From: Lepidodermella squamata | Lineage: Eukaryota > Animalia > Gastrotricha | Assembly: GCA_047495785.1 (NCBI GenBank) | Contig: JBLDXI010000001.1 | Span: forward strand, 2,232,001 to 2,296,000 | Direction of reading: 5' to 3' | Length of the DNA: 64,000 bases | Shown here: in pieces, positions 1 through 64,000 of the stretch | Numbering within the stretch: the stretch's first letter is position 1 | Layout: each line of letters starts with the position of its first letter | Translations under genes and position numbers: made by a program | Notes under the pieces: model-generated | Seen by the model: the letters and a program-made list of their open reading frames with translations, nothing else | Told to the model about the DNA's origin: nothing | Databases searched by the model: none

Positions 1-427
1 TTTAGGTGAGCACAAACTTCGCTTTTACGCGAGCAATGCTTGCCACATATCGTACACAATAAATTTGGTCGATAATCTTCAACATTGCCTGCACCTGTGA
101 ATTAAACAGTAAATGATGTAGCAAGGAAAAACGTAACCAAAACTGACAGTGCTTCTCATGGTGCCCAGCTCTCCCGAGCTTAGAATACATATGTTCACAT
201 TTTCCGCATTTGAAGAGGGACGATTCGTCGTGCATGTGTTCCTGCTGACAAGTGACCGATTCGAAGACCCTAGCGCAAACTTGACACGTGCGGCTGCTTA
301 GCGAGAGAGTCGAATCATCCTTCTCTCCTAGTACCCAGCAAATTACAAACGAAACAGGATATGGAGAAAATGTAGAATATTGCAACTTACTGACTTCATC
401 AACTCCGAAGCTACTCACCTCAGCCAT
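1..427 (-). CDS. C2H2 zinc-finger gene, runs off the left edge
   Basis: CQVC..HMH (shortened) and CGKC..HEKHC fingers; phase-1 intron to an exon ending at about 94 that reads CTICGKH..AHL. Confidence 0.65.
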
Positions 428-526
428 GCAATAGATTCAGCTTTCAGCTTTAGAAAATCATTCAATCTAGAAGAAAACTACAGCTGAAAATTTCAAGAAA
501 AAAGTTTGCTTTTCTTCGAAAAAAGT

Positions 527-994
527 TCACGATGCAACGCTACGACGTTTCCTCACTATATCAGGATGAAATTTCGAACGATGCAAACTCCAGTGCGATT
601 GGTGGGCAAATTTTATCGAACAAATAGTACAGATGTAATTTTTCAGCGGCTCAGCTCTCTTGGCCCGCTTTCTATTACGATTCGAACTAATAGGCTTCGC
701 GCGCTCACGTTTTGTCCCATCCTGACCTTGAAGCGAAAAAACTGGCAGATCGTGAGCTTCTTGCTTGACATGATGGGAAGAAGTTCCAATTTTTTCGGCA
801 GAGAGACCGGATACAGGAACGATTCCTCGGCTGTTTGACTGAGCAGCTGAGTCAATCAAATCTCGAAGGTACAAGACCTGAGCCTGGCACATCTTTACAA
901 ACGACGCCAGTTTCTCGTCTTCATTCATTGTGAAAGTGAACAGCAACAGATCGACGTAATCTTTCGCCTTATCGAGTTTGCTCGACAATTCCAT
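527..994 (-). CDS. Helical N-terminus plus single C2H2 finger
   Basis: ATG at 994; CTICSIKFAHQSHWSLHRSKFH; basic NLS-like stretch. Confidence 0.75.
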   Translation of the reverse strand: MELSSKLDKAKDYVDLLLFTFTMNEDEKLASFVKMCQAQVLYLRDLIDSAAQSNSRGIVPVSGLSAEKIGTSSHHVKQEAHDLPVFSLQGQDGTKRERAKPISSNRNRKRAKRAEPLKNYICTICSIKFAHQSHWSLHRSKFHPDIVRKRRSVAS

Positions 995-1095
995 CGTCAA
1001 TAAAACTTAAAAGTAGCTAAAATGTCGTTAAAGCAACAATAACTGATTTTCGTTGATTGACAAGTTGAAACCTTCACGCAGGAAATGCAGGACTA

Positions 1096-1890
1096 TTAAG
1101 CCTCAATACCACCTCTGTGTATTTTCATATGTCTCCAAAGACTTCGAGAACGGTCAAAAATTTTAGGGCACAGTTTGCATTTCCACTTGACATTGTCGTG
1201 TTTCGCCAGCTCGTGATCCTTAGCGCTTCGACTCGAGGAGAATGATTTGTCACAAGTCAAGCATGAAAATCGCATAGGTTGATGTACTTCTTTGACATGG
1301 TTGTACAACGCTCTTTCACTTCGAAAAGGCAAAGTGCATTCGATGCATTCGTGGTCACCGCCATGCACGCCTCTAACATGTCTCTTCCAGCTTCTCAATG
1401 ACGAATAGATTATACAGCAATATTCACACTGCTGCCAAATCGTGGGACGATGGCTATGAAACAAGCGATCGTTAAGGTAACGTGCGCAACGAATTTTGAT
1501 GTGGCAGACAGGGCATTCTCGTGAATCGTCCTTTCCTGCGTGCACCGATTTTATGTGAGTATTCATATCACATTTCAATGTCCATTGCAGCCCACACATC
1601 GTACATGTGTAATTCGGATGATCCCATTTACCATTGCCTGCACCAAGTAATTATAGGGTTGTCGTCATTAAAAATCGTACAACTTACAATGCTTCTCATG
1701 GTGCCGAACTCCCCCGAGCGTTGAATAAGTCTGGGCACATTTTGCGCATTCGAAACCGGACGATTCGTAGTGGAAATGCACGTGTTCTCGCAAATAGGTG
1801 GCTGATTTGAAGACCCTAGCGCAAATTTGACATTTACGGCGGCCAAGCGAGAGGTCCTGGAATGAATCTCTCTTGTCATCTAATACTCGA
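1096..1890 (-). CDS. About 8-finger C2H2 gene, two exons, 5' end unclear or deleted
   Basis: ORFs 1668-1994 and 1096-1599 join in frame through a phase-1 T|GTAAGT..CAG|GC intron; no in-frame ATG at the paralogous position. Confidence 0.7.
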
Positions 1891-2584
1891 AACCACGAAA
1901 AGGCAATGGTTTTGAAGTTCAATAAATTTCCGATTACCAGTTTTGCTCGATATCGAGTCGTCTGCGGCCATGTAGTGATAATATAGAGCGTCACGATTTA
2001 TAACATCAACGTGTGCTGAAACAATAAATTTTTTGAAATGGGATAGGCTATTTGAACTAACAAAACACTCTCTCCATTAACACTGCATTATCAAGTCGCA
2101 ATCACAGCCTAATGAGCAATACAATTTTGTGACACCTTTTCATTAGCATAAATCTGTATAGCGAAAGTAATCAGTATCAAATACTGTCGACTTCATTTTT
2201 CTACTCTAGATTCTGTCTAGATTCTTAACAACGCGGCCCTTCGTCTTCCCGGTGGCGACGTTTGCGATGGCGATCGACATAGAAGCGATTATTTCTGAGC
2301 GTCTGTCGCAAGGTCCGTCTTCCTTCCGGCTCTATGCCTGCTGATGTTCACAAACTCGTGGACCCGCCCTTTAGGATCGGGATAGGATGGTTTCTCTCGT
2401 ACCCTGTTCCGTCTGCTGTCCGAAACTCAAAGCCTTTATACCGTTCTTCTGTTCATTCATCGAAGTGAACAGTAACAAATGGGTGTGAACTGTCCGCCCA
2501 GAGCTTGTCTGAAATTTACTTAATTGCGTACTAAATTAAAAAATGCTCTATATCAAATAAACGAGACGTTTCGACTGCTATAAA

Positions 2585-4147
2585 TTAATTATTCATGCAT
2601 AAAAATGCGTCAAATTTAGTACGGCGTAGATGCCGAGCCGAAAGCCAAGCCGAAATGTGCTTAGTTCGGTCATCTCGATTCATCGAACTCAACTGTTTCA
2701 AAATCACATTCGGATCGCTGAAAGACGCAGGTTCCAAAAAACACAAAATAAGAACTGAACGCTCGACCATCTCATCTGCAAGAGGTTGAGAATCAACAAA
2801 GCAAGGAGAGGTGCCGTTTAGAATCAGCTTGAAATCAGCCCGGAACAATCGCATGGCTTCAAAACTTGCTTCGATGGATTCCGTAACGATTTCCCTCTCA
2901 TCATCCAAATCAACAACCAAGCAAGACCACTCCACCTCGCGTAAACGAGCCCTTTCGATCTGAACCATACTCAGGGTGGTAATGACCAGGTCGAACCTAG
3001 GTTTCGGAGCTTCGCCATTCTTCATGGCCTTAGATTCGAAGCCGAATTCGTAAATCGCAATAGTATCTCGCTCAAATTTCGGACCGGAAAAATTGATTTT
3101 GTAAATATCATCGCCGCAGGTTTTATTCAATTTTTCCATCCATCGACCCAATTTTTCTAATGATGGAACGACTATCAGTACAGGCTCAGTCAGCAAATTT
3201 TCCTTGATCAAAGACGTGAGAAAAGAGGCAGCTACCAAGGTTTTACCTAACCCTGGCTCGTCGCCCAAAATAACACTTAGGTTCTTGAACCAAGCCGATC
3301 GAAGCCAATTGATTGCTTCCAATTGCGGCTTAGAAATGTGAACGTCCGATAAATAGCTTGGCTTCTCTGAAAACGGCATCATCGGCGCGAACTTATCGAA
3401 AATTGAGGCATAGTTAGTGCGCGGTTTCAGCCTGGTCTCGTATTTCTCAATCGCCTGCTTCAAACCCGGGATCAGATGGGTCTTAGCGACTTCCCAAGAA
3501 GCTTGGCTGTAGGGTAGATCAGACCATTTAACCAAATAGAGATTAGTATTTCGGTCAGGGTCACGTTTGTTGCCGATCACTCGTTCCGGGGTAAGCCACT
3601 CCGGTTTGACCCCATTTCGATAAAATCGGTCGTAGAGGAGATGAATGTCAAAATCTAGGTCGATTTCCGGTCGATCGAAACAGGGTGGTTCTGAATTCGG
3701 ATTGATACTGGCGAGGTATTCCTGACACATTTCCCGGTGGAAAATTTCAAGTTGAGTCTGCGAAATCCATTCACAATGCCAGTAGGAAATTTTTTGAAAT
3801 TTCACGAAAAAATCCCGAGGTCGTTCCGTTAGATCGGCCTCACTCTTCGGAAATTGATAGCGCCAAGTGAGGATTTTTTCGACCGGGGCTCGAAGTGGCA
3901 GGCGTCTACAGACCGGGCATCGCCAATCCCCGACAGGTATACGGCTCAGAGGAGGGTCGAGACATTTCAGGTGATAAGAGGCTGGACAGGTGTCACAGCA
4001 CAACAACTCGCCGCCATCTTGACATTTTCTACACCAATCTTCATTCACATCAGCTTCGGGCGAAGATGTCCCAGAATCGCTGGACTGAGGACTCGAACCA
4101 GTCATAGTAATTAATCTCAGAAAGAAAATTAGCGGAATTATTCTCAT
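2585..4147 (-). CDS. CHD3/Mi-2-like: Truncated Mi-2/CHD3/4-like protein: PHD, double chromodomain, SNF2 lobe 1 only
   Basis: PHD WCRKCQDGGELLCCDTCPASYHLKCLDPPL; chromo motifs FFVKFQKISYWHCEW, RFYRNGVKPEWL, YLVKWSDLPY; Walker A GDEPGLGKT; DEAH box replaced by VVDLDD; stops just after LRRTK; intronless; alternative ATG at 4105. Confidence 0.92.
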   Translation of the reverse strand: MRIIPLIFFLRLITMTGSSPQSSDSGTSSPEADVNEDWCRKCQDGGELLCCDTCPASYHLKCLDPPLSRIPVGDWRCPVCRRLPLRAPVEKILTWRYQFPKSEADLTERPRDFFVKFQKISYWHCEWISQTQLEIFHREMCQEYLASINPNSEPPCFDRPEIDLDFDIHLLYDRFYRNGVKPEWLTPERVIGNKRDPDRNTNLYLVKWSDLPYSQASWEVAKTHLIPGLKQAIEKYETRLKPRTNYASIFDKFAPMMPFSEKPSYLSDVHISKPQLEAINWLRSAWFKNLSVILGDEPGLGKTLVAASFLTSLIKENLLTEPVLIVVPSLEKLGRWMEKLNKTCGDDIYKINFSGPKFERDTIAIYEFGFESKAMKNGEAPKPRFDLVITTLSMVQIERARLREVEWSCLVVDLDDEREIVTESIEASFEAMRLFRADFKLILNGTSPCFVDSQPLADEMVERSVLILCFLEPASFSDPNVILKQLSSMNRDDRTKHISAWLSARHLRRTKFDAFLCMNN

Positions 4148-4230
4148 AATTTAGTTAGATAATATCTCATCACAAGTTTGAATTATCATATAAATAGTTT
4201 TCGAGCTGGTAGAAAATCGAACAGCGCTTT

Positions 4231-4608
4231 TCAACTTGGGTTCTTCCGGTCCTTTTTCGGGGTCTTCGGGAAAAACTCAGCGTACATGATGTCGAAGATG
4301 TTCGAGCCATGATCCTCCAATTCAATGTTTTCCGGGACATTTTCATCATTCTTCACGAGCTCAGATTTGACCATTCCAATTGTTTCGTTCATTCGAGCTA
4401 AGTAATTACCGGCGATAATTGCAGGAAGGGCTAAATTTTGAATTATTTCAATGAGAACCAAAAGGCAATTTACAAAGATTATACCCTCATCCTTAGTTGG
4501 TCTCTTGAAGGTCGATTCAAATAAAGTTGAAGCTTTCTGGCCAAGATCATGCAATTCTACAGCCAACTCAACGGGGTTCGGTTTTTTCGCCTCAGATTTA
4601 TCAGACAT
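4231..4608 (-). CDS. Small helical protein of unknown function
   Basis: 125-aa ATG ORF with TTTTAG acceptor just upstream, 55 nt from the previous stop. Confidence 0.6.
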   Translation of the reverse strand: MSDKSEAKKPNPVELAVELHDLGQKASTLFESTFKRPTKDEGIIFVNCLLVLIEIIQNLALPAIIAGNYLARMNETIGMVKSELVKNDENVPENIELEDHGSNIFDIMYAEFFPKTPKKDRKNPS

Positions 4609-4663
4609 GGCAAAGTTACCTCTAAAATAAATTGATGCAATTTATAAATATTTACTTAGCATC

Positions 4664-5193
4664 TTAAATCATTTTGTCAGCGTGGCTTCGCGAACGATGG
4701 ACTTTGAAACTGTTCAAGTTTTTGAAATTTTTCAGGCAGAGCGGACACTGCAGCTCGCCCATATCAGATTCCGAAATTCGCGACTTTCGTTTCCGTTTAT
4801 TCACGTCATGATCAGACAGATGCAAAATTAGACCACTTCTCTTTCCAAATTTTGCCGGGCAAACTCCACACGGCCATTTCAGCGCGGGTTCGTTAATTTT
4901 CCGAGGTTGACTCTTCAGAGGCTTCCCGACCTTATTACTCGGCTCTGGAACGGCCGGTGCCTTTTCAGGCATCACTTTTTCAACTATGGGCGGATTGTCC
5001 ATTTCCCGAATAAGAGATAAAAATTCTGGCTCTTTCATCTGGTACCTGAATTCGAGAGCCAACTCTGAAAAATCGTGAGAGAGAATATTTGAAAAAGTGG
5101 TTCCGCCAGTTCTACAGTACCGTGAACTAATTTGGCACCTTGGGTTTCCAGAATAGAGCTAGCGAAGTATTTCAGAAAGCTGTCGTGATTCAT
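4664..5193 (-). CDS. Two-finger C2H2 protein, two exons
   Basis: Exon 1 MNHDSFLK..LVH with phase-1 intron to TTTTTCAG; CGVC..HLSDH and CPLC..HRSRSH. Confidence 0.75.
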
Positions 5194-5243
5194 GAATATT
5201 CAAAAAGTTCAATCCTAAAAAACCAAATGGATTCTGAAGGAAA

Positions 5244-5862
5244 TTATTTTGAATTTTCACTATGCATCTTCGAAATATGAACTCGGACATTTGACTTATG
5301 TCGCATTGCAGCGGGGCAATAGGGACACTTGAAACCGACATGATCAGGGTTGTGCATGATTCGCAAGTGGCTCTTGATGTTCGACCTGTATTTCGACTTC
5401 AGCCCACAAATGTAGCAAGTATTCGACGACGCTTTCTTCGTTGTTGTTACATTCGATTTGCCATCGTTCTTCGATAATTTAGGTTGAGGAGATTTCCGCA
5501 AAGCGACAGCCTTGTTTTCGTTTGTTAAGGACAGGTCTTGGCTAGTCAAGTTCTCGAGTTCACGCTTAAAAGTAAGCTGCAGCTCGTTTTTCAGGCCTAC
5601 ACTAGGACGCTGTTTCGGTTGGGCTTGACTAGACTTCGAAGGCTCATTTTTCAAAATTCTCCACGCCTTCGAAATATTATTCATCATTTTCATCATTTCG
5701 TACATCATCACTTTGTCTTTACACGCCACAGAAATTTCTGAAGGAATAAATAAAAAATAGAGATAATTACAAGATCTTCCAGTACGATTCCTGAAGTTTA
5801 CCTCTGCTCTGACTAAGGGCTACTTCAAGAAGGCCTACAACCTCTGAATTCGAATAACTCAT
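5244..5862 (-). CDS. Helical N-terminus plus two C2H2 fingers, two exons
   Basis: ATG 5862, G|GTAAAC..TTCAG|AA in-frame join; CYIC..HLRIMH and CPYC..HISKMH. Confidence 0.75.
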
Positions 5863-5923
5863 CGTAAAATCAGTCTACAATCAAAGAATGTAGTAAAAAT
5901 AACAAATTTCATTGATCAATGTC

Positions 5924-6118
5924 AATGTTTCTCCGGGTGTTTGCGAGAGATGTGAGTAACAAGATTTCTTTTGTGCTTCTGAACCGTAGGGCAGTAAGGA
6001 CAAGAGAAAGTCGCGGTAGGATAAAAGACAATAAAATCCAATACAATTTTAATTAGAATCTAGGACCTTTGCTCAGCTTGAGACCAATTTGCACGAGATT
6101 GGAAGCTTTTACTGACAT
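5924..6118 (-). pseudogene. Zinc-finger relic not in the ORF track
   Basis: Reads FSCPYCPTVQKHKRNLVTHISRKH*, but the upstream ATG frame stops first. Confidence 0.55.
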
Positions 6119-6202
6119 AAATGTTTAATATTTTCCTAAATTTGTGAAAGCCGTCATACGAAAACAATCAAATTCTTTTAAAAAGTAGTCAACATGTGCC
6201 AA

Positions 6203-6568
6203 TTAATGGCGCTTCCTAGTGTGCTGCTGCAGATCGCGTTGATGCCGAAATTTGCTCGGGCATTGTTGACAAGCAAAGCGAGGTGGGCCGGATTCGTGCG
6301 TCCCCATGTGCTGAATTACGGCGCGTTTGTCTTTTAGTTGTACCGCACAAACAGGACAAGCGTTTTCAGGCACGTTTTCGAACGCGTAAGAAACGGCGGG
6401 TATTGGCTGAGAATTTGTATCAGCTAGTTTGCGTATGATGTCTTTCAGGCTTTCTAATTGTAGGATCAAGGAACTAGTAGCCGTATTTTCGCCGAATTTC
6501 TTTACGAGAGATTGCTTACACGATTCGATTTCACTCAACGCCAAGTCAAGCGTAACTACTTGAGACAT
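6203..6568 (-). CDS. Helical-hairpin/YAF/two-finger protein
   Basis: ATG 6568 (MSQVV); SYAFENVPENACPVC..HMGTHESGPPRFACQQC..HTRKRH. Confidence 0.85.
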   Translation of the reverse strand: MSQVVTLDLALSEIESCKQSLVKKFGENTATSSLILQLESLKDIIRKLADTNSQPIPAVSYAFENVPENACPVCAVQLKDKRAVIQHMGTHESGPPRFACQQCPSKFRHQRDLQQHTRKRH

Positions 6569-6693
6569 AAAAAATTCGGAAAACCTAAGCACGCAAATAT
6601 ATAACAAAAATAGAGAAATCAATTAATTGGAGCGACACGTTTCAAGGCCAGAAAAGAGACGATTCATTTTCAACCTCGAACATTTTTTCAGTG

Positions 6694-7042
6694 TCAGTAA
6701 TTGTGGAGCTTTTTCTCGTGCTGCTGCAGAGTGCGTTGATGGCGGAATTTGCTTGGGCAGCTCAAGCAAGCAAAACGAGGAGGTCCAGAGTCGTGGATAA
6801 CCAAGCTGCTTCAAGCTGAGCTTGTTTTTCAACTGTACGCTGCAAATCGGGCAGACATTTTCGGGAACAGATTCCAAGGTGTAGGCGAGTGCAGGCTGGC
6901 CGCCATTTTTCAGCTCGTTAACGGCTTGTCGCACATTTTCGATGTGCGAATGCAACGCGATGGTGTCTGAATTTTTCACCAATTTAGCGCAGATGGATTT
7001 GCAGTGTTCGATTTCAGACAGCACGTAATCAAACGATTTCAT
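6694..7042 (-). pseudogene. Frameshifted paralog of 6203-6568
   Basis: Frameshift inside finger 1 near 6805; the other frame continues HDSGPPRFACLSC..HEKKLH*. Confidence 0.75.
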
Positions 7043-7460
7043 TTGACAAAACACTACTTAGTCAAAAACTAAGAATTTTCAAGATACGTCAAAAATTTCA
7101 ACACACCACGAACTATGAATTTTGTGCAACGGCGTTGAGGAAAGGTTCAACAATTCGTCGACTAAGGTCCAACGTCCATTCGAGCGAATGCGATCGGATT
7201 CCAGGAAAGCCAATCAATTCATCGTGCTCAACTATTGCGGCACCAACAAAGTTGGGAAAACACGAGGCCGGATGACTAAGTTATGACATTCACAGCGGAA
7301 TTTTACCTTGCGTTTAATTCACTCATGCGCTATACACAGGAAACCATAGATATTGCAATACGTCATGTAGATTTTCGTTTACATTTTTATCGTGTTTATA
7401 ATAACAGTTTATAACGATGCTCACTATCTATATTTGTAGATAGGATAGTAGTTAGTCAGT

Positions 7461-8418
7461 TCAACCATGCAAATCAGCGATTGCATGTATTTTCATATGC
7501 TTATTCAGGGCGTCAGGACGTCTATAACTTCTAGAGCATAATTTGCATTTCCACTTGAAATTTTCATGCACCGATAGCTCGTGAGCCTTAACGCTGCTAC
7601 TCGTGGTGAATGATTTTCCGCAAGTCACGCACGGATATCGCAAAGATTGATGCACTCGCCTGTCGTGGTAAGACAAGGAACTTAGATTTCGGAACGTCAT
7701 CGAGCATTTCATGCATTCATAATCTCCGCGATGCAAATCTCTTACATGCTTCTTATAGCTTTCCACAGAGGTGCAATTCTGTCGGCAGTATTCACATTGC
7801 TGGAAGGGCGTAGGGCGATGATTCAGATTCATGTGCTTGAAGAGGTATAACGAGCATAAGAATTTGACTTGGCAGACGGGGCAGATATAGTCATCTTCCT
7901 TAGATTGACCTTGAACACTTCCAGCGATTTTATCTGAGAATTTGAAAATGACGTAGTCTATATTAAAAAACTCACAACCGACAGCACGTCTCGTGTTTGC
8001 GACATCCTATTTGCGTGAAAAACGCTTTTGGACATGCGGTGCATTTGAACATGGGTGAATCGTCGTGCAAATGCACGTGTATTCGCAGACCTCCGACTGC
8101 ACGCAACACCCTGTCGCAAATTGGGCACTTGTGGTTACCAAGCGAGGGGCCTTGATGTGAATCGCTTCCCATTCGATGCTTATTCTTACTGTGTCGGCGC
8201 AGATCACTTTGACGGCGGTATTCGCTCGGACATCTGGAGCAAACGAAGCTAGGAGGTCCTGTGTCGTGAACAGCCATATGCCTTTTCAAACGTGACAAGT
8301 TTTGGGACGGCACGTTGCAGATCGGACAGACATTACCGGAAACAGATTTCAATGGGTAGCCTACTCCGGACTTGCATTTTTCGATTCCAGGTATCATCTG
8401 ATCGAACGGTGGTTCCAT
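7461..8418 (-). CDS. 9-finger C2H2 gene (4+5), two exons
   Basis: ORFs 7972-8427 and 7461-7832; intron 7934-7982 has a weak GTCGGT donor. Confidence 0.8.
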
Positions 8419-8509
8419 TACGAGCAAATAATTAATAACCTAAACCACGGGAATAGCAAGCTAAAAGTTTGCTGAAGTTGTTAAGATTTCATGCAACACC
8501 TCAAACCTC

Positions 8510-8800
8510 CAAGCACTGATGCGCTGATGCGCTGATGGCGGAATTTGCTGGGGCAAGCGAAACGACGGGTTTCCATATTGTGAATGGCGCGTATTGGTAT
8601 TCCAATACGATGGATGGCATTCACAATATGGCAGCCATAAACTTAGCGATTCATTTCCAACCTCTAACGTTGTTTTTTCCATCAATTTTTTCTGTGAACT
8701 CAGGCGTTTATTCTCTTGCATCCACAGATCGCGTTGATGGCGGAATCAAACAATTTCATTCAACAATTCAGTGCTTGGCCAAAAGCCAAAAACTAGGAGA
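8510..8800 (-). pseudogene. Scrambled relic of a 6694-7042-like gene
   Basis: RFACPSKFRHQR fragments, duplicated and interrupted. Confidence 0.55.
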
Positions 8801-9211
8801 ATCAAAGATGCAAGTTACGTTTTGATCTCAACACACCGCGAAAGAGGAAATTAGGTACGTGTGAAAATGGATACAAGTAATTGAACCTTCACTCAAAGCA
8901 AGGGCTGTTCGATCGAATGCGGACTATTTTGCTGACAACAATTGTTCATAATTGGTTCCCAGGGAGTCGACCATTCCTGCGTTCTCCAGAAAATTCTGTT
9001 AAAAAGTATATAGCGGCGATACGAACAAATTAGGAAAACGCTAAGCCAGGTGACAATATTATGGCATTCACATCAGCGTTAAGCTACGATCCACTCCTGA
9101 AAGCATCGCCCAACACAGTATCCCATAGATATTGCCATTCATCATGCAGATTTTTGTTTTCAGGTTTATCGTGTTTATATGATCAAAGTTCATTAGTCAG
9201 TTTCAGTGCCA

Positions 9212-10161
9212 TCATGGGCAATTTCCGATGGTATGACTTTTCATATGCCTTGTCAGGTTAAAAGGACTGTTGTAACTTTTAGGGCATGATTTGCAATTCC
9301 ACATGACATTGTCATGCATCGACAGCTCATGAACCTTGACGCTGTTATTCGAGACAAATGATTTTCCACATGTCAAGCACGCAATTCGCAAAGACTGATG
9401 CACTCGCCTGACGTGATCATACAAGGAACTTTGATTTTCGTAAGTCCTGGAGCATTTAATGCATTCGTGGTCTCCGCGATGCACTTCTCTTACGTGCTTC
9501 TTGTAGCCTTCCATTGAGGTGCAAATCTTCCGGCAGTATTCACATTGCTGGAAAGGCGTAGGGCGATGATATCGATCCAAGTGATTTGAGAGGTATAATG
9601 AGCATAAGAATTTGACATGGCAGACGGGGCAAGTCCTGTCAGTCTCCATAGGTTGACCTATCTTATGGTTGAAAATGTTGCAGTTAAAAATCAACGAACT
9701 CACAACTCACAGCGCTTCTTGTGGTTGCGAAATCCGGATGTCGTGAAAAATGCTTTTGGACACGCAGCGCATTTGAACATGGGCGAATCGTCGTGCACAT
9801 GCATGTGTTCTCTTAGAACCTTAACCGAAATAAGCACCGCAGAGCAAATTGGACATGTGCGACTGCCAAGATGCGAATTTCTCTTTTTTTCTAAAACTGA
9901 TAATCTATTTTGAGATTGATGCTTCTTTTTTCCGTGTTGCTGCAGATCACGTCGACGGCGGAATATGCTCGGACAACTCGAGCAAGCAAAGCGAGGAGGC
10001 CCCGAGTCGTGGACAACCATGTGCATTTTCAAAATGTACAGCCTTTTGAAAGATTTGCCGCAAATCGTGCAAGTGTTACCGGAATCAGATTCCATGGTTA
10101 GGGATAATCCAGAATTGCATTTTTCGATGTTAGGTATCAGCTGATCGAATGATGGTTTCAT
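9212..10161 (-). CDS. 9-finger C2H2 gene (4+5), two exons
   Basis: MKPSFDQLIP start; HDSGPPRF, HDDSPMF and HRPTPFQQC linkers; T|GTGAGT donor at 9710. Confidence 0.85.
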
Positions 10162-10244
10162 TACGAGCGATTAATAAATCAACTAAATCACGGTAAATGG
10201 CAAGCTAAAAGTTCTCAAAAGCTGTTAATATTTTATGCAACTCG

Positions 10245-12425
10245 CTCCCTGAACCTAGGTCGCGTACCATCTGCAAGATCGCTGTCGATGCCAAACGTCG
10301 GCTCGACCAAGTGACAAAGGAAGATAAAGACAAGCCGCTCGGTGCCTGGCGCAGACCTTACAGCCCAAGCCTCGGCAAGGGCATGCTTTACGATAAGTGG
10401 CACCATCGCATCACCGCCAACCGCTGCAAACCCTGTCACCCGCAATCACTTCCAGTTGCCCGACGGAGCACGTCTGTTCGACATAACGGATACCCGGCTG
10501 CATTTAGTTCACGGAGGACATTGTCAGCCAATGCCCTGGGCTACCACGACGCTCACGCTTTCAGTTCCGATCTTATCCCTCCGCAGCCTATGAAGTACTC
10601 TGAAACGGGATCACAGCTGTCTGACACAACGGCAGACATCTTAGACAGAAAAAAATGTCAACACTTAAAATCATCCAGAGCAGTTCGATTATCAATTATT
10701 ATTACTAGCGGTCCATTTGGGCCTTCTAGGTACAACTTCGGTACAACTCTCCACTAGACGGAAGCATTTCACCACAAACAAGGTTCACTCAACTTCGACG
10801 GTCAATCAAGTCATGCAGTTACGCTCGGAGAACGCTGACATAGCGCCCTCGTATCACCGCCCGCCGTCTGGGCAGTCCCCTTCACACCTGCCTTCGTTCG
10901 ATGACCTTCGATGTCTGTTGACAGACCCCCGTCTCCCCCACCCCAGTTGTCAAGTCGTGCGTCGAGCCAACCCTTGCAACAAGCGTCGCCCAAACGTGTA
11001 AAATGGCGCGGAAGACCCGCCGCTTCCGCCCCCGACTCGTATGTCTGCTCCGACCCCCAGAAGCGCCTATCAACTACAAGTTCGTGATTATCGACCGCAT
11101 CACTGGCATGACTCGCGTGGAGCCGGAATCGGTCAAGGTTGCTCAGGTCAAGCTCTCGGCCATCTGCTACCGCCTGCCCTCCTGTTACACTGGCGACACT
11201 CTGCGCCCACTTTTCAGGTCCGAGTATATCGAGGAAATCCGCGAGGTTCCCCCGCTCCCTGGCAAACAGACGTCACCAATGGTGCTCTGTCTTCCGGCTA
11301 AGCATTACGAGGACGCGATGGCTAATGGTGTAAAGTTCCTGAATCGCCGCATATAAGGCTACAAGTTGAAAAGCAAGGGTCTCTCTCCTACCTGCCTGAA
11401 GTGCGCCGCTTACGGCCACGTCGCTGTCAATTGCTCTCCGAACAACACGCAACGACGCAGCCGTTGTGCTGCGACTTACCAGGCGATTTTCACCCGTCTC
11501 GCTGAGCCTGAAGATCGTCATTACCCCCACTGCAGTGGTGGCGGTGAGCCTCATCATTCTGGTTCATAGCGTGGCTGCCCTGCGTTCAAGACCGCCCAAG
11601 CTGAAGAGGTGGCTCGTCGCCATGCTATCACCGTCGCCCGTGAAGCGAAAGCTGCCGAGCGTGAAAAGCGTCTTCAACAAGCAAAGATTCCCGAACATCT
11701 ACGACGTGGCCCCACGCACTTACTTCCTCCTTCCTCTCGGCGGATCAAAGCCCGCTCTGTGGTCTCCCTCATCTCCTTCGTGGGTGCCTCCTTGGTGAGT
11801 GGCTCGCTCTGGATGTTGTCCCTTTCGCTGGCTCGTCTGTAGTTCGTTTTCTTACCGGCTATTGTCCGCCGACTTCGTTCTTAGTTCTTTGCTTCCTGGA
11901 ATCCGAGTTCGCTGGAGCCTCGGCCTCAGGTATTCCTCGTTTCTTTAGCGGGGTTTTCAATGGCAAGTCACCAATGGGGGTTCACAGTCGCGTGATTTCT
12001 GGAACCCTCACGGCTATTCCGCGCATCACTTCACCCGTCTCGGTCTGACTATTTTCTCTTCGTAAGCCACAGTAACCCACCTTCCCTCCCCACCCACCGC
12101 CTATCTGTCAGCTAAATATCTGTCAGCTCGACCGACAGATAATGACAGCGGCCCGGTAATTACTTCCCGGCTATGAAGCATCCGAAGAACGAGCAAGACG
12201 TAAACTCGCTAACAAGCCCTTTCAGTTTCGCCGTTCTCTAGACACAGCGGTACGCTATATAGCTCTTGAATTTAGGAATCGCCGCAGGTGCCGCGGCCGC
12301 TTTTCGGCCCCGCTGCGGGAGAGCCGATGCCTACAGCTGCCAAGGCGCTTACTCTAACAGTTTCGGTCATGTCCCTTTGCGGCCATCAACTACTCTGCAC
12401 ACGGGATTATACCTGCCTGGCACGA
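10245..12425 (+). mobile_element. Nest of decayed non-LTR retrotransposon fragments (gag/ORF1 plus probable RT-thumb piece)
   Basis: GC-rich insert; CCHC knuckle CLKCAAYGHVAVNC at about 11392, further CPHC..H..CPAF knuckle remnant; AKRRL..GAD remnant at about 10290; stops and frameshifts. Confidence 0.75.
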
Positions 12426-51805: not shown

Positions 51806-51878
51806 AATTGGATAAATCTATAAATAAATCCCACAAAATTAATGGATAATTTAATGTCCCGTGAAAAGGAAGATAACA

Positions 51879-52175: not shown

Positions 52176-52253
52176 TTTAGGATAAATTATCTAAAATTGA
52201 AATTCAATTCAATTACAATGCAAAATTAATAGGTTATGAATTATGAAGGAATT

Positions 52254-53053: not shown

Positions 53054-53434
53054 TTATTTCTCAACTTCATCTTTCGATGTGGAAAAATGGCGAATATAAA
53101 ACGATTTAAAATCATTAGCCCGTGTGGCACAAACAGGACATATTGAGGATGAAGGAGACTCGTTTTCTAAATTTTCGATTTTCGCTTTCGCCATTGTTAA
53201 ATGATCGCTTAACGAGTCGCGTCTCGGCCTATCTAGAACATCGAACAGGTTGATTAGGCGTAGCATATCCGAGCGCGCGTTTGACAGCAAGTCCGATAAC
53301 CGCCGGTTTTCCACTGAAAATTCTAAGATATGTTAGGCATCATCGCTGAAGCTATAAATCCGACCTGAAAGACGTTCAATTTCCTCCATCGGCACTGGTT
53401 CGGGGTTCAATTTTTCCGGTAAATCACCTTCCAT
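53054..53434 (-). CDS. Coiled coil plus degenerate finger, two exons
   Basis: MEGDLPEK..S G|GTCGGA..TTTCAG|TG join; CPVC..H. Confidence 0.6.
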
Positions 53435-53526
53435 TTCGGTTTATAAATTACACAATAATTACCGCCTGCGTGAAAGAGCAATCAGTCTAATTTTGTGTAT
53501 GAAGCAAAATTCAAGATGAATCGACC

Positions 53527-53604
53527 ACTGAAATAAGGTAACGCAGGTGTCCTAGGATGGGCAAAAGGAAACATCCTAGAACCCCTGCGTTACCAATATT
53601 CAGT
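53527..53604 (-). ncRNA. Pre-miRNA-like hairpin (candidate)
   Basis: 78-nt imperfect stem of about 33 bp with 12-nt loop; the minus-strand fold gains a G:U pair. Confidence 0.4.
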
Positions 53605-53738
53605 AGCATCAGTTACAAAATTACACAAATAAAACTAAAAAATATCATCAAAATTGAAAGATAGCCTTTCATCATTCGAAATGACTATCACACGAGAAAT
53701 TTAGGTAAAATCCATCCGAAATATTTCGATTCCATCTA

Positions 53739-54134
53739 TCACAAAGCGCCATGAATCGACTTTATATGCCGCTTTACAGCTTGATATTGGCGATACGTTT
53801 TCCCACATTGGTCACATTTGAATTTCGACTCTGGAACGTGCAGAAACATGTGTTGTTTCAACGACCATGCGGTCTTGAGCTGACTGAAGCACACAGGACA
53901 TTTTAATGGATTATCCGCAATTGAATTCGGGGCGAACTGATATGAAGAAGGCTGTGGAGGGCAAGGCTCTGGTTTCAATTGCTCGAGTTCAGCTCGCAAC
54001 CTCGCAATTTCGGCCTGGGCATCGACGAGCTGTTTACGGAGCATAGCTGATTCAGATTCTAAAAAGAAGCCAGTATTTTTCTCGTAAAAATCGTACAAAA
54101 AATCATTGACAAAAATACCAGCTTTCCGCATCAT
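53739..54134 (-). CDS. Coiled-coil/YQF/two-finger protein
   Basis: LVDAQAEIARLRAELEQL..SYQF..NPLKCPVC; start may be 54044. Confidence 0.85.
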   Translation of the reverse strand: MMRKAGIFVNDFLYDFYEKNTGFFLESESAMLRKQLVDAQAEIARLRAELEQLKPEPCPPQPSSYQFAPNSIADNPLKCPVCFSQLKTAWSLKQHMFLHVPESKFKCDQCGKTYRQYQAVKRHIKSIHGAL

Positions 54135-57630: not shown

Positions 57631-58015
57631 TCAGTGCGCGGATTTCGCGTGATTGTAGAGAGCACCCTGAGAACGGTACGTTTTTCCGCAGGTTTTGCAT
57701 TGATGCTGAGGCTGATCAGAATGAACATTTGCGATATGCGTGGTAACAATTTTCTTCGCCTTGAATACACACAAACAAATAGGACACGTTGTATCGCTGA
57801 TTTTCGGCTCAGCGGAAAATTGATACGGCGCCGAAGTAGACAGCGATGATTTCAGAATTTCGATGTTCTTTAATTGCAATTCGAGGTCGCTGATCATACT
57901 AGGATGCTTGGCTACAAAACAGGGGCAGGTCCAGATAAGAGCTGGAGAAATAATTTCCGTAAATACCTTTCAGAAGAAGCAAAAATCGCTCGATTTCTTC
58001 CACAGCTTTAGCCAT
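57631..58015 (-). CDS. Helical/YQF/two-finger protein B1
   Basis: MAKAVEEI exon; PYQFSAEPKISDTTCPIC..HIANVHSD. Confidence 0.82.
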
Positions 58016-58498
58016 TAATTGATCCAACTTAGATTAAGATTCTGGAAGATAAAATTTTGGACATAAAAGCTGAATGAAGTAAATCAGATTAAATAAAACT
58101 GGTCGACTGAAAGCAAAACAATTCACAGGAACTGCAAGGCATTCTTGGACCGGGCTATCGGCCTTAAGGTTATGAATTCAAGGAAGAGCGCCTAACGAGG
58201 TAACGAGGTCTTATCTCGGACAAAATCTTGTCTCCATCCATTGAAATTTGTTCTTCAGTCGAATTTACTGGGGCGATGGCGATTTTTCAGGCAGCTTCCT
58301 TCAGTACTTCTTTCCGGCGGGGAAAAATCCACTATTTTGACACAGAATACTCTGAAAGGCACTTGAACCAAATATTCAACTCTGAGCCATTATAGCATTT
58401 TAAACCGATTTTATAAGGCCAATCGTGTCTGAAATGCGACCACGCTACAGTAAAAGCTGCCTAAAAACCATAAAGAAATGAATCGAATTTACGATTAT

Positions 58499-58914
58499 TT
58501 ATCGCGACAAGTTTTCGAGTGATACCACACACAATGCACTAGGTGATCGATAAGATTTTTCGCAAATTTCACACCTATGGAGAGTGTGGTCGGAATTCGA
58601 GTGAATATCGCGCAAGTGATTCTTAGCTACAGTTTTCGACGCGAAACTTTTGAAGCAAACAGGGCACGTTTTTTCATCTAGTTGAGTTTCTGTGAATTGA
58701 TAAGGCACATTCGAACCGAGGCTCAATCTCGCTTGTTTCAGCTTTCGAACTTGATTTCGCAACTCAACGACCAAATTCGGAACTGCGGGAAATCACAGGT
58801 TACAGGATGCTATAACAGGCGAAAAATGGGTCAATTACCCGAGTTCGGATTCGAAAACAATTGATCAGCTAAGGATGAAAGGTGAGTTTCTACTTCTTCA
58901 ACGAGTTGCGACAT
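58499..58914 (-). pseudogene. B2, TG-slippage frameshift removes the last ligands of finger 2
   Basis: TTGTGTGTGGTATCAC; the other frame reads WYHSKTC. Confidence 0.7.
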
Positions 58915-59067
58915 AATTACGGCAAAGTTAAAAAATTACTTCAATTTTCAAACTAGAAGGGGAAATGAGAACATTTACGAGTGCAAGGTTAGGATTGCCA
59001 TAAGAAAGTAGGCACTTCCTTTGAATAAAAATAAAATTCCCATGTCATGTGATAACTTCCACAGATA

Positions 59068-59488
59068 TTAGGTGTTACAATGTTTCGAATGATAACTCAG
59101 TCCACCCGAAGACCGATAAACTTTTTCGCATTTCACACACTTGTGGAGGCCGAGAGCGGAATTTGAATGAATATCGCGCATGTGCTTCTTAGCCACAAAT
59201 TTCGAAGCGAAACTGTTGAAGCAAACAGGGCAAGTTTTCTCGTCTACTTGACTTTCTGTGAAGTGATAAGACACAGAGCTATTCGAACCAAGGCTCGATC
59301 GGGCTTGTTTCAGCTTTTCAACTTGGCTTTTCAAATCAGCGATCAAGTTTGGATGCCCAGAGACTGCGAGAAATCAAAATTTGACCATTAATAGGGTAAA
59401 TGACTCTACTACCTTTGATCGGATTAGACTGGAGTTTAGCAGTTAGAGACGATAGGAAAGTTTCAACTTCTTCAACGAGTTGCGACAT
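59068..59488 (-). CDS. B3
   Basis: MSQLVEEV exon; SYHFTESQVDEKTCPVC. Confidence 0.82.
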
Positions 59489-59586
59489 AATTACGATGAA
59501 AATTTACCCGGTTCTAAGCGAAAAATAGAAGCCAATCACGTCTATTTCTTATCAAGTTCAAACAATGAAGTCTTTCATTAGAAAAT

Positions 59587-60002
59587 TCACGAATGCGCTG
59601 ATTTCTTATGCTTCCACAGTGAAGCGTTAGCGGTGTAAGATTTTCCGCAGACATCACAGGTATGGCGAATGTTTGAATGAATATCCGCAACATGTTGTCG
59701 TACTATCACAGCAGTTTTGAATGTTCGGAAACAGACTGGACATGTGGTTTCGTCGAATTTAGCATCTGAATACTGATAAGGGATGGCAGGAAACGAATTA
59801 GGATTTTCCAGCCGTTCTACATTTCTCAGCTGAGAATTTAGTTCGATCGAGAAATTAGCGTCCTGAAAAGCTGGAAAATAACGACCTTCGAAATTCGGGC
59901 GAAAATTAGGAAACCAAGCCTCAGACCTGAATAATTCTTCGAAGAGATATTAGCTCTGATCGACAGCAAAAACTGTTTGATCGCTTCACTCGGATTACTC
60001 AT
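59587..60002 (-). CDS. B4 (not in the ORF track)
   Basis: MSNPSEAIK exon; PYQYSDAKFDETTCPVC..HVADIHSNIRHTCDVC..HKKSAH*. Confidence 0.8.
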
Positions 60003-60041
60003 TAATTATGGAATTCTAAAAAAACGGCATATAGGACCAAA

Positions 60042-60449
60042 TCACTTATGAGCTCTATTCGAATGCTTCCACAGTGCACCTCTCGAGCGATAATTTTGTC
60101 CACAAGTCTCGCATTTGTACTCAGGCGGGGAATTTGAATGAATGTCATTAATATGGACCTTCGTTGTAGCTTTACTCTTGAACTTCGCGAAACAAATAGG
60201 GCACGTCAATTCGTCGACATGATTCTCCGAAAATTGATAACTAGGGCCTGGTGCTGCCGCATTACCCTTGACGTTTTCGAGCTGATCAATCGCTATCTCA
60301 AGGTCTCTCTCCAAATTCGTGTATCCGGAAACTATTTGAATGACAATTAAATCGTAAAATGGAGCTTTGAAAAATAAATCGTTACCTCTGATAGAATTCG
60401 ATTGAATTTTGTTCCGCAATGAAATGAGAAAATTCTCTATCACGTCCAT
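60042..60449 (-). CDS. B5
   Basis: PSYQFSENHVDELTCPIC..HINDIHSN; probable short in-frame intron. Confidence 0.85.
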   Translation of the reverse strand: MDVIENFLISLRNKIQSNSIRGNDLFFKAPFYDLIVIQIVSGYTNLERDLEIAIDQLENVKGNAAAPGPSYQFSENHVDELTCPICFAKFKSKATTKVHINDIHSNSPPEYKCETCGQNYRSRGALWKHSNRAHK

Positions 60450-60574
60450 TCAACCCAAATAAGCTACGGAAATTCAAATAATATTAAAAAAATCGAATTC
60501 GATTAGACAAAAAAATTGCAAATTATGGAAAAAAGACGAACAAGAAACATGAAGGTCATTGATTAACAATTTTT

Positions 60575-61002
60575 TCAACGATGATACTTCCTATTATGTG
60601 TACAAAGAGCCGAATTGGATCGGTAAGATAAACCACATTCGTCGCATCTGAACTGAGGACCGTTCGAGTGGACTTCTGCGATATGCCGCTTGACCGAGTG
60701 CTTCTGGGCGAATTTACTATAACAAATCGGGCATGTATTTTCGTCGATTTTGGCCTCAGAAAATTGATAGGGCGAGGTCGATGAAGCCGACGCTAATGAT
60801 AGTTTCACTTTGTTGAGATTGTTTATCTGGCGCGTGAGATCGTTCGTGAAATTCGGATACCCGGTGACTAAATAAATTTGCAAAATTTGAAAATTAGAAC
60901 TCGGTCGAAAGAAAACACTGGCTTACCAATAACAGCTTTTGAATCGATATTTTTCGCTAACGAAGTCAGGAAACTGTGAACTTCATTCGCGCAATCGGCC
61001 AT
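60575..61002 (-). CDS. B6
   Basis: MADCANEV exon, G|GTAAGC intron; PYQFSEAKIDENTCPIC. Confidence 0.82.
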
Positions 61003-61145
61003 GAAATTTACAAATAGTACCACTAGACATTAATATTGTCAAAATTTGAATCCACGGAGTAAAAAAATCGAAAAATTATTGACGGGCAGACGAAAAATAT
61101 TATTAATGAAATTCTCCAGAATTCAACCGAATTCTTGCAAGGACG

Positions 61146-61553
61146 TCATGGATGATTCCTTCTAAAGTGCCTTGCCAATGATCGGTTGGCTCGGTAAGAT
61201 GCGCCACACACTTTGCAATCAAATTTAGGAGCTTCAATCGAATGAACTTCGGCGATGTGCAGCCGAGCATCAGACTTTCGTTTGAATTTGCCGAGGCATA
61301 TCTGACAGGTGAATTCGTCGACCATGTGCTGACTGAACCGGTATGGCGATGAAGCTATTGCTTGCGGTGTTTTCAGTCTCTCAGCGTGCTCAATAAGGGA
61401 CCTCAGCTCGTTCCCAAAATTAGGAGAACCATTGTCTGAAATGATAAGATAGTTGAAAAATTGGTAGAATCAGTTAAACCTACCAGTAATAACTTGAATA
61501 TGTTTCTCTAATGACATCAGGAACTTGTGAATTTTATCCACAAAATCGACCAT
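61146..61553 (-). CDS. B7 (not in the ORF track)
   Basis: MVDFVDKI exon; PYRFSQHMVDEFTCQIC..HIAEVH..CKVC..HFRRNHP*. Confidence 0.8.
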
Positions 61554-61699
61554 GTCATAAAAAACCACAGATATACTAGAAGAGAATAACTGAATAATTG
61601 CACAAATAATAATATAATTTATATAAAATTGAGGCAGCTAACAGAATTTTCAGATGTAGAAGCATCATTTTAGACAGCAGCTCCAACTTCATCAGGAGC

Positions 61700-61985
61700 C
61701 ATCAACAATTCCGCCAATGAACTTGAAACTTGGAAGCGGAACAGCTCCACGAGCCGCTGATTCCAGAGGGGTTTCCGGCGCCATTTTCTGAACATTCGAC
61801 CTTCGTAGAGATAGTAATGGGCGATTGAACGGCCTGATACCCGGTGACTACATAAATTTATATATTAGGAAATTTATTCAAAAATTCTAAAAAACACCAA
61901 CATAAATACCAATAACAGATTTTGAATCGATACTTCTCGCAAAATAGGCCAGGAATCCGCAAACTTCGTTAGCATAGTCGGCCAT
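61700..61985 (-). pseudogene. B6-like 5' duplicate fused to unrelated sequence, no fingers
   Basis: MADYANEV..VTGY matches B6, then diverges. Confidence 0.6.
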
Positions 61986-62519
61986 GAAATAATAACTCTA
62001 AAAATTGAATAGTTTCTATATTCCAACTTCTGGAGGAACTATAAACTAAGCCGTGAAATAAACGTGAAATAAACGAGCAAACACCCCATTCAAGAAAAAG
62101 CCAAGAAAACTATAAGCCCCAAGTTTTAGCTCCACTAAGCGAACCCTTAAGGCATCCCTGCGAAGAAGGGTTCGAGCTACAGCCCGGATACCATAAGATT
62201 CAAACCCTCGGAAAATTCCAAATTTTACGAAGGAACCGATACTTCCGAAAATTCTAAAACCTACCGCAATTTCTAAGCCAAAAACTCCCAATGCTACCAA
62301 AACCCGCTTGGAAAAGAGGCGATTCGCGCTAGACCTTCGACGATACGTCTTCGGACGTATTGGAAGCCAATGAAATCAGCCAACTCAAATAATAGCCACT
62401 CACTGCAGACGAGTTGGCGGGGTTGAATCTCCACCTTCCACTGGATAAGCTCAAGGCGGCTCCGTTGCAGGAGGAGGGCGACGTATTCCAATTGTTGTCA
62501 GACTGAACTCCCTGTACCT

Positions 62520-63660
62520 CGTCGTTCGCTACAGCGGTTCTTCGAGCAGACCCAGCACCGCTACGCGAACAACGCCGTCCGTTTCGTTCTCCCGTCCGCG
62601 AAGCCGCTTCTCTGCTAACCCGCTGTCCCGTTCTATGCTGGCCCAGGCTTCCTCAAGGTCCTTTGCCCACCCTCGGTGTTCAAGATCTCATCCAGCTTTT
62701 CCGCTCTTGGTCTATCGCATAACTTGTCTGGTCGTCCTGTTTCTTTCTTTTGTTCTTTTTTTTTTCCTTGCCTTTCCTGTCCGGGGTATCGCCGGCCTTC
62801 GCCATTCGCCAGTCGGCCCTTCACCGCGCCCGCGTTTGTAGCCACCCCCGCCTCGGCCTCCTGGTCTACCAGACCCTGATCCGCCCGCTAGCCGAATTCG
62901 GCTGTCCTGCGTTCGCCAACTGTCATCCGCGCTTGTTTGCGCAGCTACTTGCCATCGAAAAGCGGGCTGTGAAGTCTATCCTCGGCCTTGTCCGCGGGAC
63001 ATCCGACGCCGTCTACGACGCCCAGGTCGCCGCCGCGTTTCCGACGTTCACGCCGCTCGGCGTACGGTTGGGGGAGCTGGCTTTCCACTTCTTCAACCGT
63101 GCGCTGGAGAACGGTGGTCCCGTTGGGCTCGCACCTTCCCTTGTCGACCCTGCTAGGAGCCAGTCCGTTGCCTGCTGTCCGCCCCTCGCTCCAGCGTCCC
63201 CCAGTTCTGCAGTCCGGTCCTTGGGTAGCTGATTTGCCGGTTGGCTTCCTCCCTTAGCCTGCCGCTCGGTCTCCTGCTCGTCGCAACCGTCGTGGTGTCT
63301 CCTTTGCCTAACGCCGTCTTGCTCGGCGGACGTCGCGGGTGTGAGTCCCGGGCCGTCTGGGCTGCCTCCATGTTTAGTTTCTCTTCCTTTTGTGTGTTTT
63401 TACCACTAGGTTCGTCTTGTTCCCTCACTGGTCGCTCCATGTGCCTGCGGTGAGCTGGCAGCGGTTGGGCCACGGGCGGCGGCACAATTCTATCGGCGGC
63501 CCGTGTGCTGGTGTTCTCGGATGGGCGGCGAGTGTTGCCGCTGCTGCCTGTCCCTTTACTGTTCATACTTTTTTGCCTGGTTTTGTTCCTTTCTGGATGT
63601 GCATGATAACCCACGTTTAGCCTGCGGGCTGGTGGAATACGATCGAGGCTTGTAAGGCCG
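62520..63660 (+). mobile_element. Non-LTR ORF2 remnants (C-terminal Cys domain plus post-RT region)
   Basis: LLVYQTLIRPLAEFGCPAF..LLAIEKRAVKSILG matches the LINE post-RT motif; LLTRCP remnant at about 62610; GC-rich. Confidence 0.8.
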
Positions 63661-63888
63661 TGCCTTTTCCAATATTTTCGAGGGTAAATATTGTCTATGA
63701 CCCTTACCCAACTTATCTTGCTTTCCCGTAATTAATCGTAAACAATCGTAATTAATTGCTAAGGTAAGAACGAAAAGAAAGGATTTGCGTTCGTAAAAAA
63801 TTCATTTACGAAAAATTGATAACAGATAGACATTGAGGTAAAAATGTCCAAACGAACCATAAATCCAATCGCCAACATTTCCAGATCT

Positions 63889-64000
63889 TCATGGATGGCT
63901 GGTTTTAACATGCCTCCTCAATGATCGATTAGCTCGGTAAGACGCGCCGCACAAGTCGCATTTAAACTGAGGAGGTTCCACTGAGTGAACTTCGGCAATG
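63889..64000 (-). CDS. B8, 3' part only (runs off the right edge)
   Basis: IAEVHSVEPPQFKCDLCGASYRANRSLRRHVKTSHP*. Confidence 0.8.
   Translation of the reverse strand, partial: IAEVHSVEPPQFKCDLCGASYRANRSLRRHVKTSHP

Follow-up and report, generated by a model that had tools for sequence, protein, structure and literature searches.

A birth-and-death array of small C2H2 zinc-finger genes with candidate short operon-like units in Lepidodermella squamata

Spliced-leader (SL) operons are known from nematodes, Oikopleura, Ciona, chaetognaths, rotifers and flatworms. In the chaetognath P. gotoi, operons called at a spacing of <250 bp reach at most nine genes; metabolic functions are reported as over-represented among their members, development and signalling as under-represented (PMC12460157). 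Zinc-finger genes, for their part, form large, mostly head-to-tail, lineage-specific clusters in mammals (KRAB-ZNF) and insects (ZAD-ZNF), and at Drosophila lola and mod(mdg4) a same-strand series of finger-encoding units has a splice acceptor before each unit.

Here, we analyzed a 64-kb window, by which we mean the whole stretch of DNA studied, that holds an array resembling each of these systems in part. Like metazoan SL operons, the array has co-oriented genes, spacers of tens to ~150 nt and an unpaired T-rich 3′ splice site just upstream of downstream ATGs; its runs of two to six genes fit the <250-bp rule and the nine-gene maximum of P. gotoi (PMC12460157). Unlike those operons, it has no SL RNA gene found within the window, its cistrons are mostly tandem paralogues for DNA-binding proteins, and AAUAAA-type hexamers are not enriched. 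Like the KRAB-ZNF and ZAD-ZNF clusters, it is a large, mostly head-to-tail set of lineage-specific finger genes that mixes selected, intact copies with decayed ones and has transposon remnants between them. In contrast to these clusters, the members scanned by Pfam have no KRAB, ZAD, SCAN or BTB domain, protein size is very small at 91-250 aa with 2-6 fingers, and its genes are spaced by tens of bases rather than kilobases. It shares with lola and mod(mdg4) the same-strand series of finger-encoding units preceded by acceptors, whereas its units have their own ATG and stop and differ in acceptor phase, with no shared N-terminal exon seen. We propose, with moderate confidence, that birth and death of tandem copies shaped the window's array of small, lineage-specific C2H2 genes and that these are joined into short operon-like units.

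Composition and maintenance of the array

All 143 C2H2 fingers in the window lie on the minus strand. They fall within 54 of the 88 minus-strand ATG-initiated ORFs of at least 60 aa, while none of the 56 such ORFs on the plus strand carries a finger. BLAST clustering of stop-to-stop ORF pieces placed 69 minus-strand pieces in a single cluster, and curation gave 72 minus-strand gene units, including unrelated non-finger genes, in agreement with the original prediction of a single-strand array of ~69 genes. The array had also been expected to run off both window edges; it does so on the left, but the last 2.4 kb on the right (61554-64000) has no finger gene. Direct-repeat families, D1-D18 in the A/B unit, show 60-92% identity, and three main paralogous families, A/B, M and C, make up the array (Table 1). 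A few unrelated genes are interspersed, and gene packing is very tight; this packing seems general to the genome rather than special to the locus.

Through unequal crossing-over, every copy has come to lie head to tail on a single strand, the uniform orientation of the paralogues being due to tandem duplication of the three families. This bears on a kinetoplastid-like reading, in which one or a few promoters drive dozens of genes and SL trans-splicing then resolves their transcripts. That all 72 units share a strand, unrelated non-finger genes among them, speaks for such giant units, but tandem duplication by itself accounts for the co-orientation of the paralogues. It leaves unexplained, however, the operon-like run of four unrelated genes at 2585-5708. 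The first three members of this run encode a 154-aa finger protein, a 124-aa finger protein and a 125-aa protein without a Pfam family. The fourth is intronless and encodes the PHD-chromo-SNF2 N-terminal half of a Mi-2/CHD3-like protein (Pfam), whose best-scoring local alignment has 34% identity, with none above 49%.

Table 1. Coordinates of the main features of the window
Feature	Position	Strand	Description
Family A/B, repeated two-gene unit	2..32140	-	~14 copies, many decayed
Mixed run, four unrelated genes	2585..5708	-	Spacers 205, 55, 83 nt; acceptor TTTATTTTAG 13 nt before ATG at 4608
55-nt spacer	4609-4663		Stop-to-ATG gap
50-nt spacer	9650-9699		Stop-to-ATG gap
Break, 2.5 kb	10162..12626		Higher G+C; plus-strand ORFs without Pfam match
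MITE-like hairpin	19408..19607		55-nt arms, 98% complementary; within 1.6-kb inter-gene gap
35-nt spacer	34282..34316	-	Stop, then CCATACCTAG, 5 nt, ATG
MITE-like hairpin	35223..35399		73-nt arms, 99% complementary; within long inter-gene gap
Break in array, 4.4 kb	40142..44584		Higher G+C, from composition
Tc5/pogo-type transposase DNA-binding remnant	41231-41710	+	Inside the 4.4-kb break; Pfam HTH_Tnp_Tc5, HTH_psq
Family M, ~17 single-exon microprotein genes	44585..54134	-	91-131 aa
Family M decayed copy	48541-48828		Frameshift
Family M decayed copies	49557-49841, 52254-52508		Without N-terminus
43-nt spacer	50396..50438	-	AATAAA overlapping stop, then TAATTTTTAG, 16 nt, ATG; without GT
Family C, seven tandem two-exon genes	57631..61553	-	109-123 aa; N-terminal helix and two C2H2 fingers
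Family C introns	61436-61483, 60868-60926, 60332-60385, 59871-59926, 59364-59412, 58783-58838, 57912-57966	-	GT-AG
Family C copy	58499-58914		Second finger broken
39-nt spacer	60003..60041	-	Stop, then GTTTTTTTAG, 13 nt, ATG

By Pfam, the array members scanned match C2H2-type models only, plus an AT hook in one protein, with no KRAB, ZAD, SCAN, BTB or other shared N-terminal domain. Against public protein collections, a family-A protein found no match and a family-M profile two weak matches only; an exhaustive search with that profile was swamped by poly-finger proteins and recovered no family members. Judged by these comparisons, the array families are lineage-specific and without relatives in those collections.

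Family M proteins combine an N-terminal CxxC, a coiled-coil-like stretch and two C2H2 fingers. In alignment, M1 is invariant, as are all Cys and His ligands in 13 copies. Selection was computed for this family only: pS exceeds pN in each of the 91 pairs, and dN/dS is 0.09-0.3 at a dS of at least 0.76 (0.09-0.19 in the nearest pairs, at dS 0.76-1.9). Substitution patterns of this kind show intact copies to be kept by purifying selection. In family C, excising one conserved GT-AG intron of 48-59 nt yields an intact ORF in all seven genes, each starting with ATG. About a third of the copies, by contrast with these intact ones, are decaying: approximately 22 of the 72 units have a truncation, a frameshift or no start, and family M has three decayed copies. 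These decayed copies, together with the lack of homologues in public protein collections, would suit an array composed mostly of pseudogenes, in which packing is irrelevant to expression. We consider this quite improbable, given purifying selection on family M at saturating synonymous divergence, the invariant Cys and His ligands, and the conserved intron and open frame throughout family C.

Junction lengths and interruptions

Of the stop-to-ATG gaps listed in Table 1, those of 35, 39 and 43 nt lie at the coordinates first given for them and those of 50 and 55 nt are confirmed; further gaps of 65, 73, 76 and 82 nt are likewise present. Among the 71 junctions between units, 40 are at most 250 nt long and 28 at most 130 nt. 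Within family C, the genes are separated by 143, 125, 39, 98, 153 and 483 nt. Defining an operon-like run as co-oriented neighbours chained at ≤250 nt, we obtained 32 runs, the largest with six genes.

The remaining 31 junctions exceed 250 nt, and eight of them exceed 1 kb; among the long gaps are 51115-51502 and 46088-46539. In several of these junctions lies a Tc5-like transposase remnant or MITE-like hairpins. These interruptions argue against giant units, as does the brevity of described animal operons, with nine genes the maximum in P. gotoi (PMC12460157). On the other side, of the 27 genes behind a long gap, 14 also have an acceptor-like site ahead of them (8.1 expected). On balance, we judge transcription of the array from one or a few promoters to be very improbable. 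The candidate giant operon of ~69 genes thus gives way to runs of at most six genes, parted by long junctions, some with transposon remnants.

AATAAA or ATTAAA does occur in spacers, as had been noted, but without enrichment: 8 of 71 stop-proximal regions carry one against 8.9 expected by chance, and the species may use variant signals. Paralogous upstream regions can be aligned over only ~80 nt before the ATG, and these alignments contain no promoter-like conserved block. An Rfam search of the whole 64-kb window returned no RNA family and no SL RNA gene.

Acceptor-like sites upstream of start codons

A pyrimidine-rich AG had been predicted before the ATG in most short gaps, and our counts uphold this. 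Of 30 short spacers, 20 have a Y-rich YAG no more than 40 nt ahead of the following ATG. The same rule gives 8.3 ± 2.4 in a composition-matched Markov simulation, in which none of 1000 runs reaches 20, and 6 in an antisense control. Individual motifs are similarly over-represented, with 11 occurrences of TTTTAG (3.7 expected) and 9 of TTCAG (3.0 expected). The spacer-restricted count against Markov simulation is the informative test here. At naive or curated starts, two other approaches yielded just a modest excess. An early strict polypyrimidine rule exceeded mononucleotide shuffles by no more than 1.7 SD, and a PWM, for which only seven cis-introns served as input, scored a median of 4.4 versus 2.5 bits at 53 curated starts (p ~5e-4). 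Acceptors are read upstream of family C genes, and TTTTAG-type sites lie 8-56 nt upstream of the ATG in family M. Common descent of some spacers inflates the acceptor counts. With dS at 0.76 or more in family M, the spacers have diverged, so that the motif's survival in them speaks for selection.

Most of the genes could instead be compact and independent, each with its own promoter and no leader, the upstream AGs being 5′-UTR intron acceptors or chance T-rich sequence. The chance-level poly(A) hexamers are consistent with this, and cis-introns of 48-59 nt indicate that the splicing machinery copes with very short intervals. This explanation may hold for genes that follow long gaps. Short spacers are harder to accommodate, as 35-80 nt is too small for a 3′ end, promoter, 5′ exon and donor. 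Furthermore, 17 of 24 acceptor-bearing short spacers have, within the spacer, no GT[AG] ahead of the acceptor, and the short-spacer acceptor excess over composition-matched simulation is strong. We therefore regard independent genes as a possible but doubtful account of the array.

A further alternative, of the lola or mod(mdg4) kind, is that the finger units are alternative 3′ exons joined to shared upstream exons, either in cis or between transcripts. The same-strand tandem two-finger units with an acceptor ahead of each resemble such a locus, and family A/B adds to the likeness. In this family, an A gene (150-250 aa, 4-6 fingers) is followed by a 50-140 nt spacer and then a B gene (~145-175 aa, 5 fingers); the A stop codon overlaps a GTGAGTT, and in most copies the spacer is largely free of stops in the B frame. 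In three copies, however, joining this GTGAGTT donor to the closest good acceptor restores an identical stop behind an identical residue, and we found no convincing donor-acceptor pair for an A-B fusion through an in-frame cis intron. Acceptor-to-ATG distances occupy all three phases, so a shared coding exon cannot feed the units. The units also retain start codons of their own: family M has an invariant M1, and ATG begins all seven spliced family-C ORFs. With no BTB or other shared N-terminal domain among the proteins scanned, alternative exons are the least probable of the explanations considered.

Family A/B does not fit a simple two-cistron model in every respect, as this model leaves unexplained the open B frame and the start-less B copies, three of which have no ATG ahead of finger 1. 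B might be translated from a start of its own, by reinitiation at an ATGA overlap (16444-16447) or as a fusion. In flatworms, an AUG can be donated by the leader. In the two start-less copies that we examined by hand, the acceptor and the B frame differ in phase, so a leader-donated AUG would not rescue them.

Likely transcription units and their significance

The sequence evidence supports metazoan SL-type operon anatomy at many junctions, namely a co-oriented neighbour, a spacer of 35-150 nt and a putative 3′ splice site that precedes the ATG by 5-40 nt. The likeliest arrangement would be some twenty short operon-like units rather than one or a few giant pre-mRNAs. In such an arrangement, about 40 of the 71 junctions (those of ≤250 nt) would connect neighbouring genes, giving some twenty polycistronic units with two to six cistrons apiece. 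Formation of the upstream cistron's 3′ end would release each downstream mRNA, to which a spliced leader would be added at the T-rich YAG acceptor 5-40 nt before the downstream ATG. Longer junctions, from 251 nt to 4.4 kb and some with transposon remnants, would separate transcription units. What survives of the trans-spliced operon first predicted is thus the short runs with operon-like junctions and not the one or few pre-mRNAs, given 31 of 71 junctions above 250 nt and runs of no more than six genes.

A more extreme possibility is that duplication inside operons has led to dozens of fast-evolving DNA-binding proteins being produced from very long or chained, SL-resolved polycistronic units, which we hold to be very unlikely. 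Such units, if real, would exceed every animal operon described so far and form an operon class built of regulatory paralogues, but a giant operon of this sort is unlikely. Genes in operons are said to be seldom duplicated. Operons are also usually portrayed as rich in housekeeping genes and poor in regulators (PMC12460157). The short runs, if true, would mean that animal operons can gain and keep tandem duplicates of transcription-factor-like genes, and would also furnish a group of small two-finger proteins that are lineage-specific and under selection.

Tandem duplication, selection and decay

Translation of both strands of the window (G+C ~43%; animal DNA) gave 88 minus-strand ATG-initiated ORFs of at least 60 aa, 54 of which carry C2H2 motifs. 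Across the whole window, none of the 56 plus-strand ATG-ORFs of at least 60 aa contains a finger. The single-strand layout of the original prediction is therefore confirmed: all 143 fingers lie on the minus strand, and the sole domain-bearing plus-strand ORF is a transposase remnant. Its array was also said to run off the right edge, which we do not find, as no continuation of the finger array is visible at the right end, a stretch that is probably a decayed mobile element.

When stop-to-stop ORF pieces were clustered by BLAST, 69 from the minus strand fell into a single finger superfamily, and repeat analysis identified many direct-repeat families (60–92% identity, spaced 0.6–6 kb). Together, these establish that the array was built by tandem duplication. 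We curated by hand 72 units, each a gene or decayed gene copy. A two-gene repeat (A/B), a set of microproteins (M) and a two-exon set (C) form the main paralogous families. Separately, a two-finger gene behind an AT-hook-like stretch occurs as a segmental duplicate (36222–38022 and 54964–55575), with distant copies whose upstream parts differ.

Features of the window (positions counted within it)
Feature	Position	Strand	Description
Family A/B	~2–32140	minus	Two-gene unit, ~14 repeats; A, 4–6 fingers; B, 5
Half Mi-2 ORF	2585–4147	minus	520 aa, intronless; Pfam: PHD, chromo, N-terminal half of SNF2; Mi-2/CHD3-like
Four-gene run	2585–5708	minus	Unrelated genes; spacers 205, 55, 83 nt
Long junction	10162–12626		2.5-kb break, G+C-rich
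Probable MITE	19408–19607		Near-perfect hairpin, 55-nt arms, 98%; in long inter-gene gap
Probable MITE	35223–35399		Near-perfect hairpin, 73-nt arms, 99%; in long inter-gene gap
Long junction	40142–44584		4.4-kb break, transposase remnant inside
Tc5/pogo-type transposase remnant	41231–41710	plus	DNA-binding part, HTH_psq and HTH_Tnp_Tc5; opposite strand to array
Family M	44585–54134	minus	~17 single-exon microproteins, 91–131 aa
Family C	57631–61553	minus	Seven genes, two exons each
Right-end stretch	61554–64000	both	G+C-rich, overlapping ORFs, zero Pfam matches
Other units			Several lone finger genes, handful of finger-less ORFs (hand curation)

The family M units are real genes under purifying selection. 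pN is below pS in all 91 pairwise comparisons, dN/dS is 0.09–0.19 for the closest pairs (dS 0.76–1.9), and all zinc ligands are invariant across 13 copies. At the N-terminus these proteins all carry M-x-x-C-x-x-C without variation, followed in each by a heptad-like stretch, the conserved motif Y-x-F and two fingers; they may be dimeric DNA readers. In family C, excising one GT-AG intron (48–59 nt, at a conserved position) leaves an intact ORF of 109–123 aa in 7 of 7 copies. Decay affects ~22 of the 72 units, through frameshifts, missing N-termini and one ATG-to-GTG change; in one B subfamily most copies are split into short ORFs. That the array as a whole is dead is nonetheless contradicted by the selection data.

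No relatives of family A or M were found in a collection of 5.8 billion proteins, and long poly-finger proteins were all that a profile search against 1.8 billion representatives recovered. The finger families are lineage-specific, with the source organism and its close relatives absent from the protein collection searched.

Acceptor sites in the short spacers

The short stop-to-ATG gaps quoted in the original prediction proved correct. Because the family C introns match the shortest spacers in size, however, a short gap alone does not prove an inter-gene junction. The usual spacer consists of a stop codon, a T-rich tract of 15–60 nt (coding-strand T content 40%, versus 29% for the window), a TTTTAG- or TTCAG-type site and 5–40 nt before the ATG. 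A pyrimidine-rich YAG lies within 40 nt of the ATG in 20 of 30 short spacers, so the acceptor-like sites noted in most of them are present. First-order Markov simulation of the same spacers gave 8.3 ± 2.4, with at least 20 reached in 0 of 1000 runs, and the antisense control gave 6. Within 60 nt upstream of 53 curated starts, TTTTAG and TTCAG occur about three times as often as expected. As synonymous sites of family M paralogues are near saturation, their spacers can no longer be aligned, and persistence of the acceptor motif is therefore not simple inheritance. By contrast, the AATAAA/ATTAAA hexamers that had also been noted do occur, but at chance level after stop codons (8 of 71 versus 8.9 expected).

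Compact, independently transcribed genes with 5′-UTR introns could account for acceptors after long gaps, where 14 of 27 genes have such a site (8.1 expected; reached in ~15 of 1000 simulations); these sites fit either outron trans-splicing or ordinary 5′-UTR introns. Such an arrangement is unworkable in spacers of 35–80 nt. Furthermore, 17 of the 24 acceptor-bearing spacers have no GT[AG] ahead of the acceptor, which thus cannot pair with a mini-exon donor inside the spacer. A lola-like locus of alternative exons is contradicted by the conserved ATG and stop of every unit and by acceptor-to-ATG distances in all three phases.

The A/B junctions are less regular. GTGAGTT overlaps the A stop codon (stops include 7972, 9700, 13142, 15002 and 16444–16447), with a good acceptor 40–50 nt downstream; in three copies read by eye, this splice would restore the same final residue and stop. 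In 9 of 10 copies the B frame is open over nearly the entire A–B spacer; no in-frame ATG precedes the intact first finger of three B copies, and in one copy A stop and B start overlap as ATGA (16444–16447). Translational coupling, transcript fusion and decay could each explain part of this behavior.

Run sizes and possible operon organization

Among the 71 junctions between neighbouring units, 28 are ≤130 nt, 12 are 131–250 nt, 23 are 251–1000 nt and 8 exceed 1 kb. In the chaetognath Paraspadella gotoi, where operons were called by chaining genes ≤250 nt apart, 18% of genes lie in operons, the longest of nine genes (PMC12460157). The same rule applied to our 72 units yields 32 runs, with 59 units in runs of at least two and at most six genes in a run; chaining at ≤130 nt gives at most four. 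A single giant operon, as originally proposed, is unsupported and unlikely: long gaps carry transposon remnants (the Tc5/pogo-type one with a 72-nt direct repeat on either side, 40919–40990 and 41728–41799), runs are short, and tandem duplication alone yields uniform paralogue orientation. What is known of animal operons also argues against it.

The four-gene run is the only one that duplication does not explain. It ends with the half Mi-2 ORF, which shares ~34% identity with its best database matches and stops short of the helicase C-terminal domain.

The array is best read as a birth-and-death set of small finger genes with operon-type packing. Its duplication history, the selection on its genes and the acceptor excess are established. 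Many neighbours would probably be co-transcribed as short units, which a spliced leader would resolve at the upstream acceptors; both co-transcription and leader are inferred, and confidence in the whole reading is only about even. The array itself is new and lineage-specific, and its organization is of a known kind. Operons of tandem regulatory paralogues would be unusual in content and of modest interest to operon specialists.
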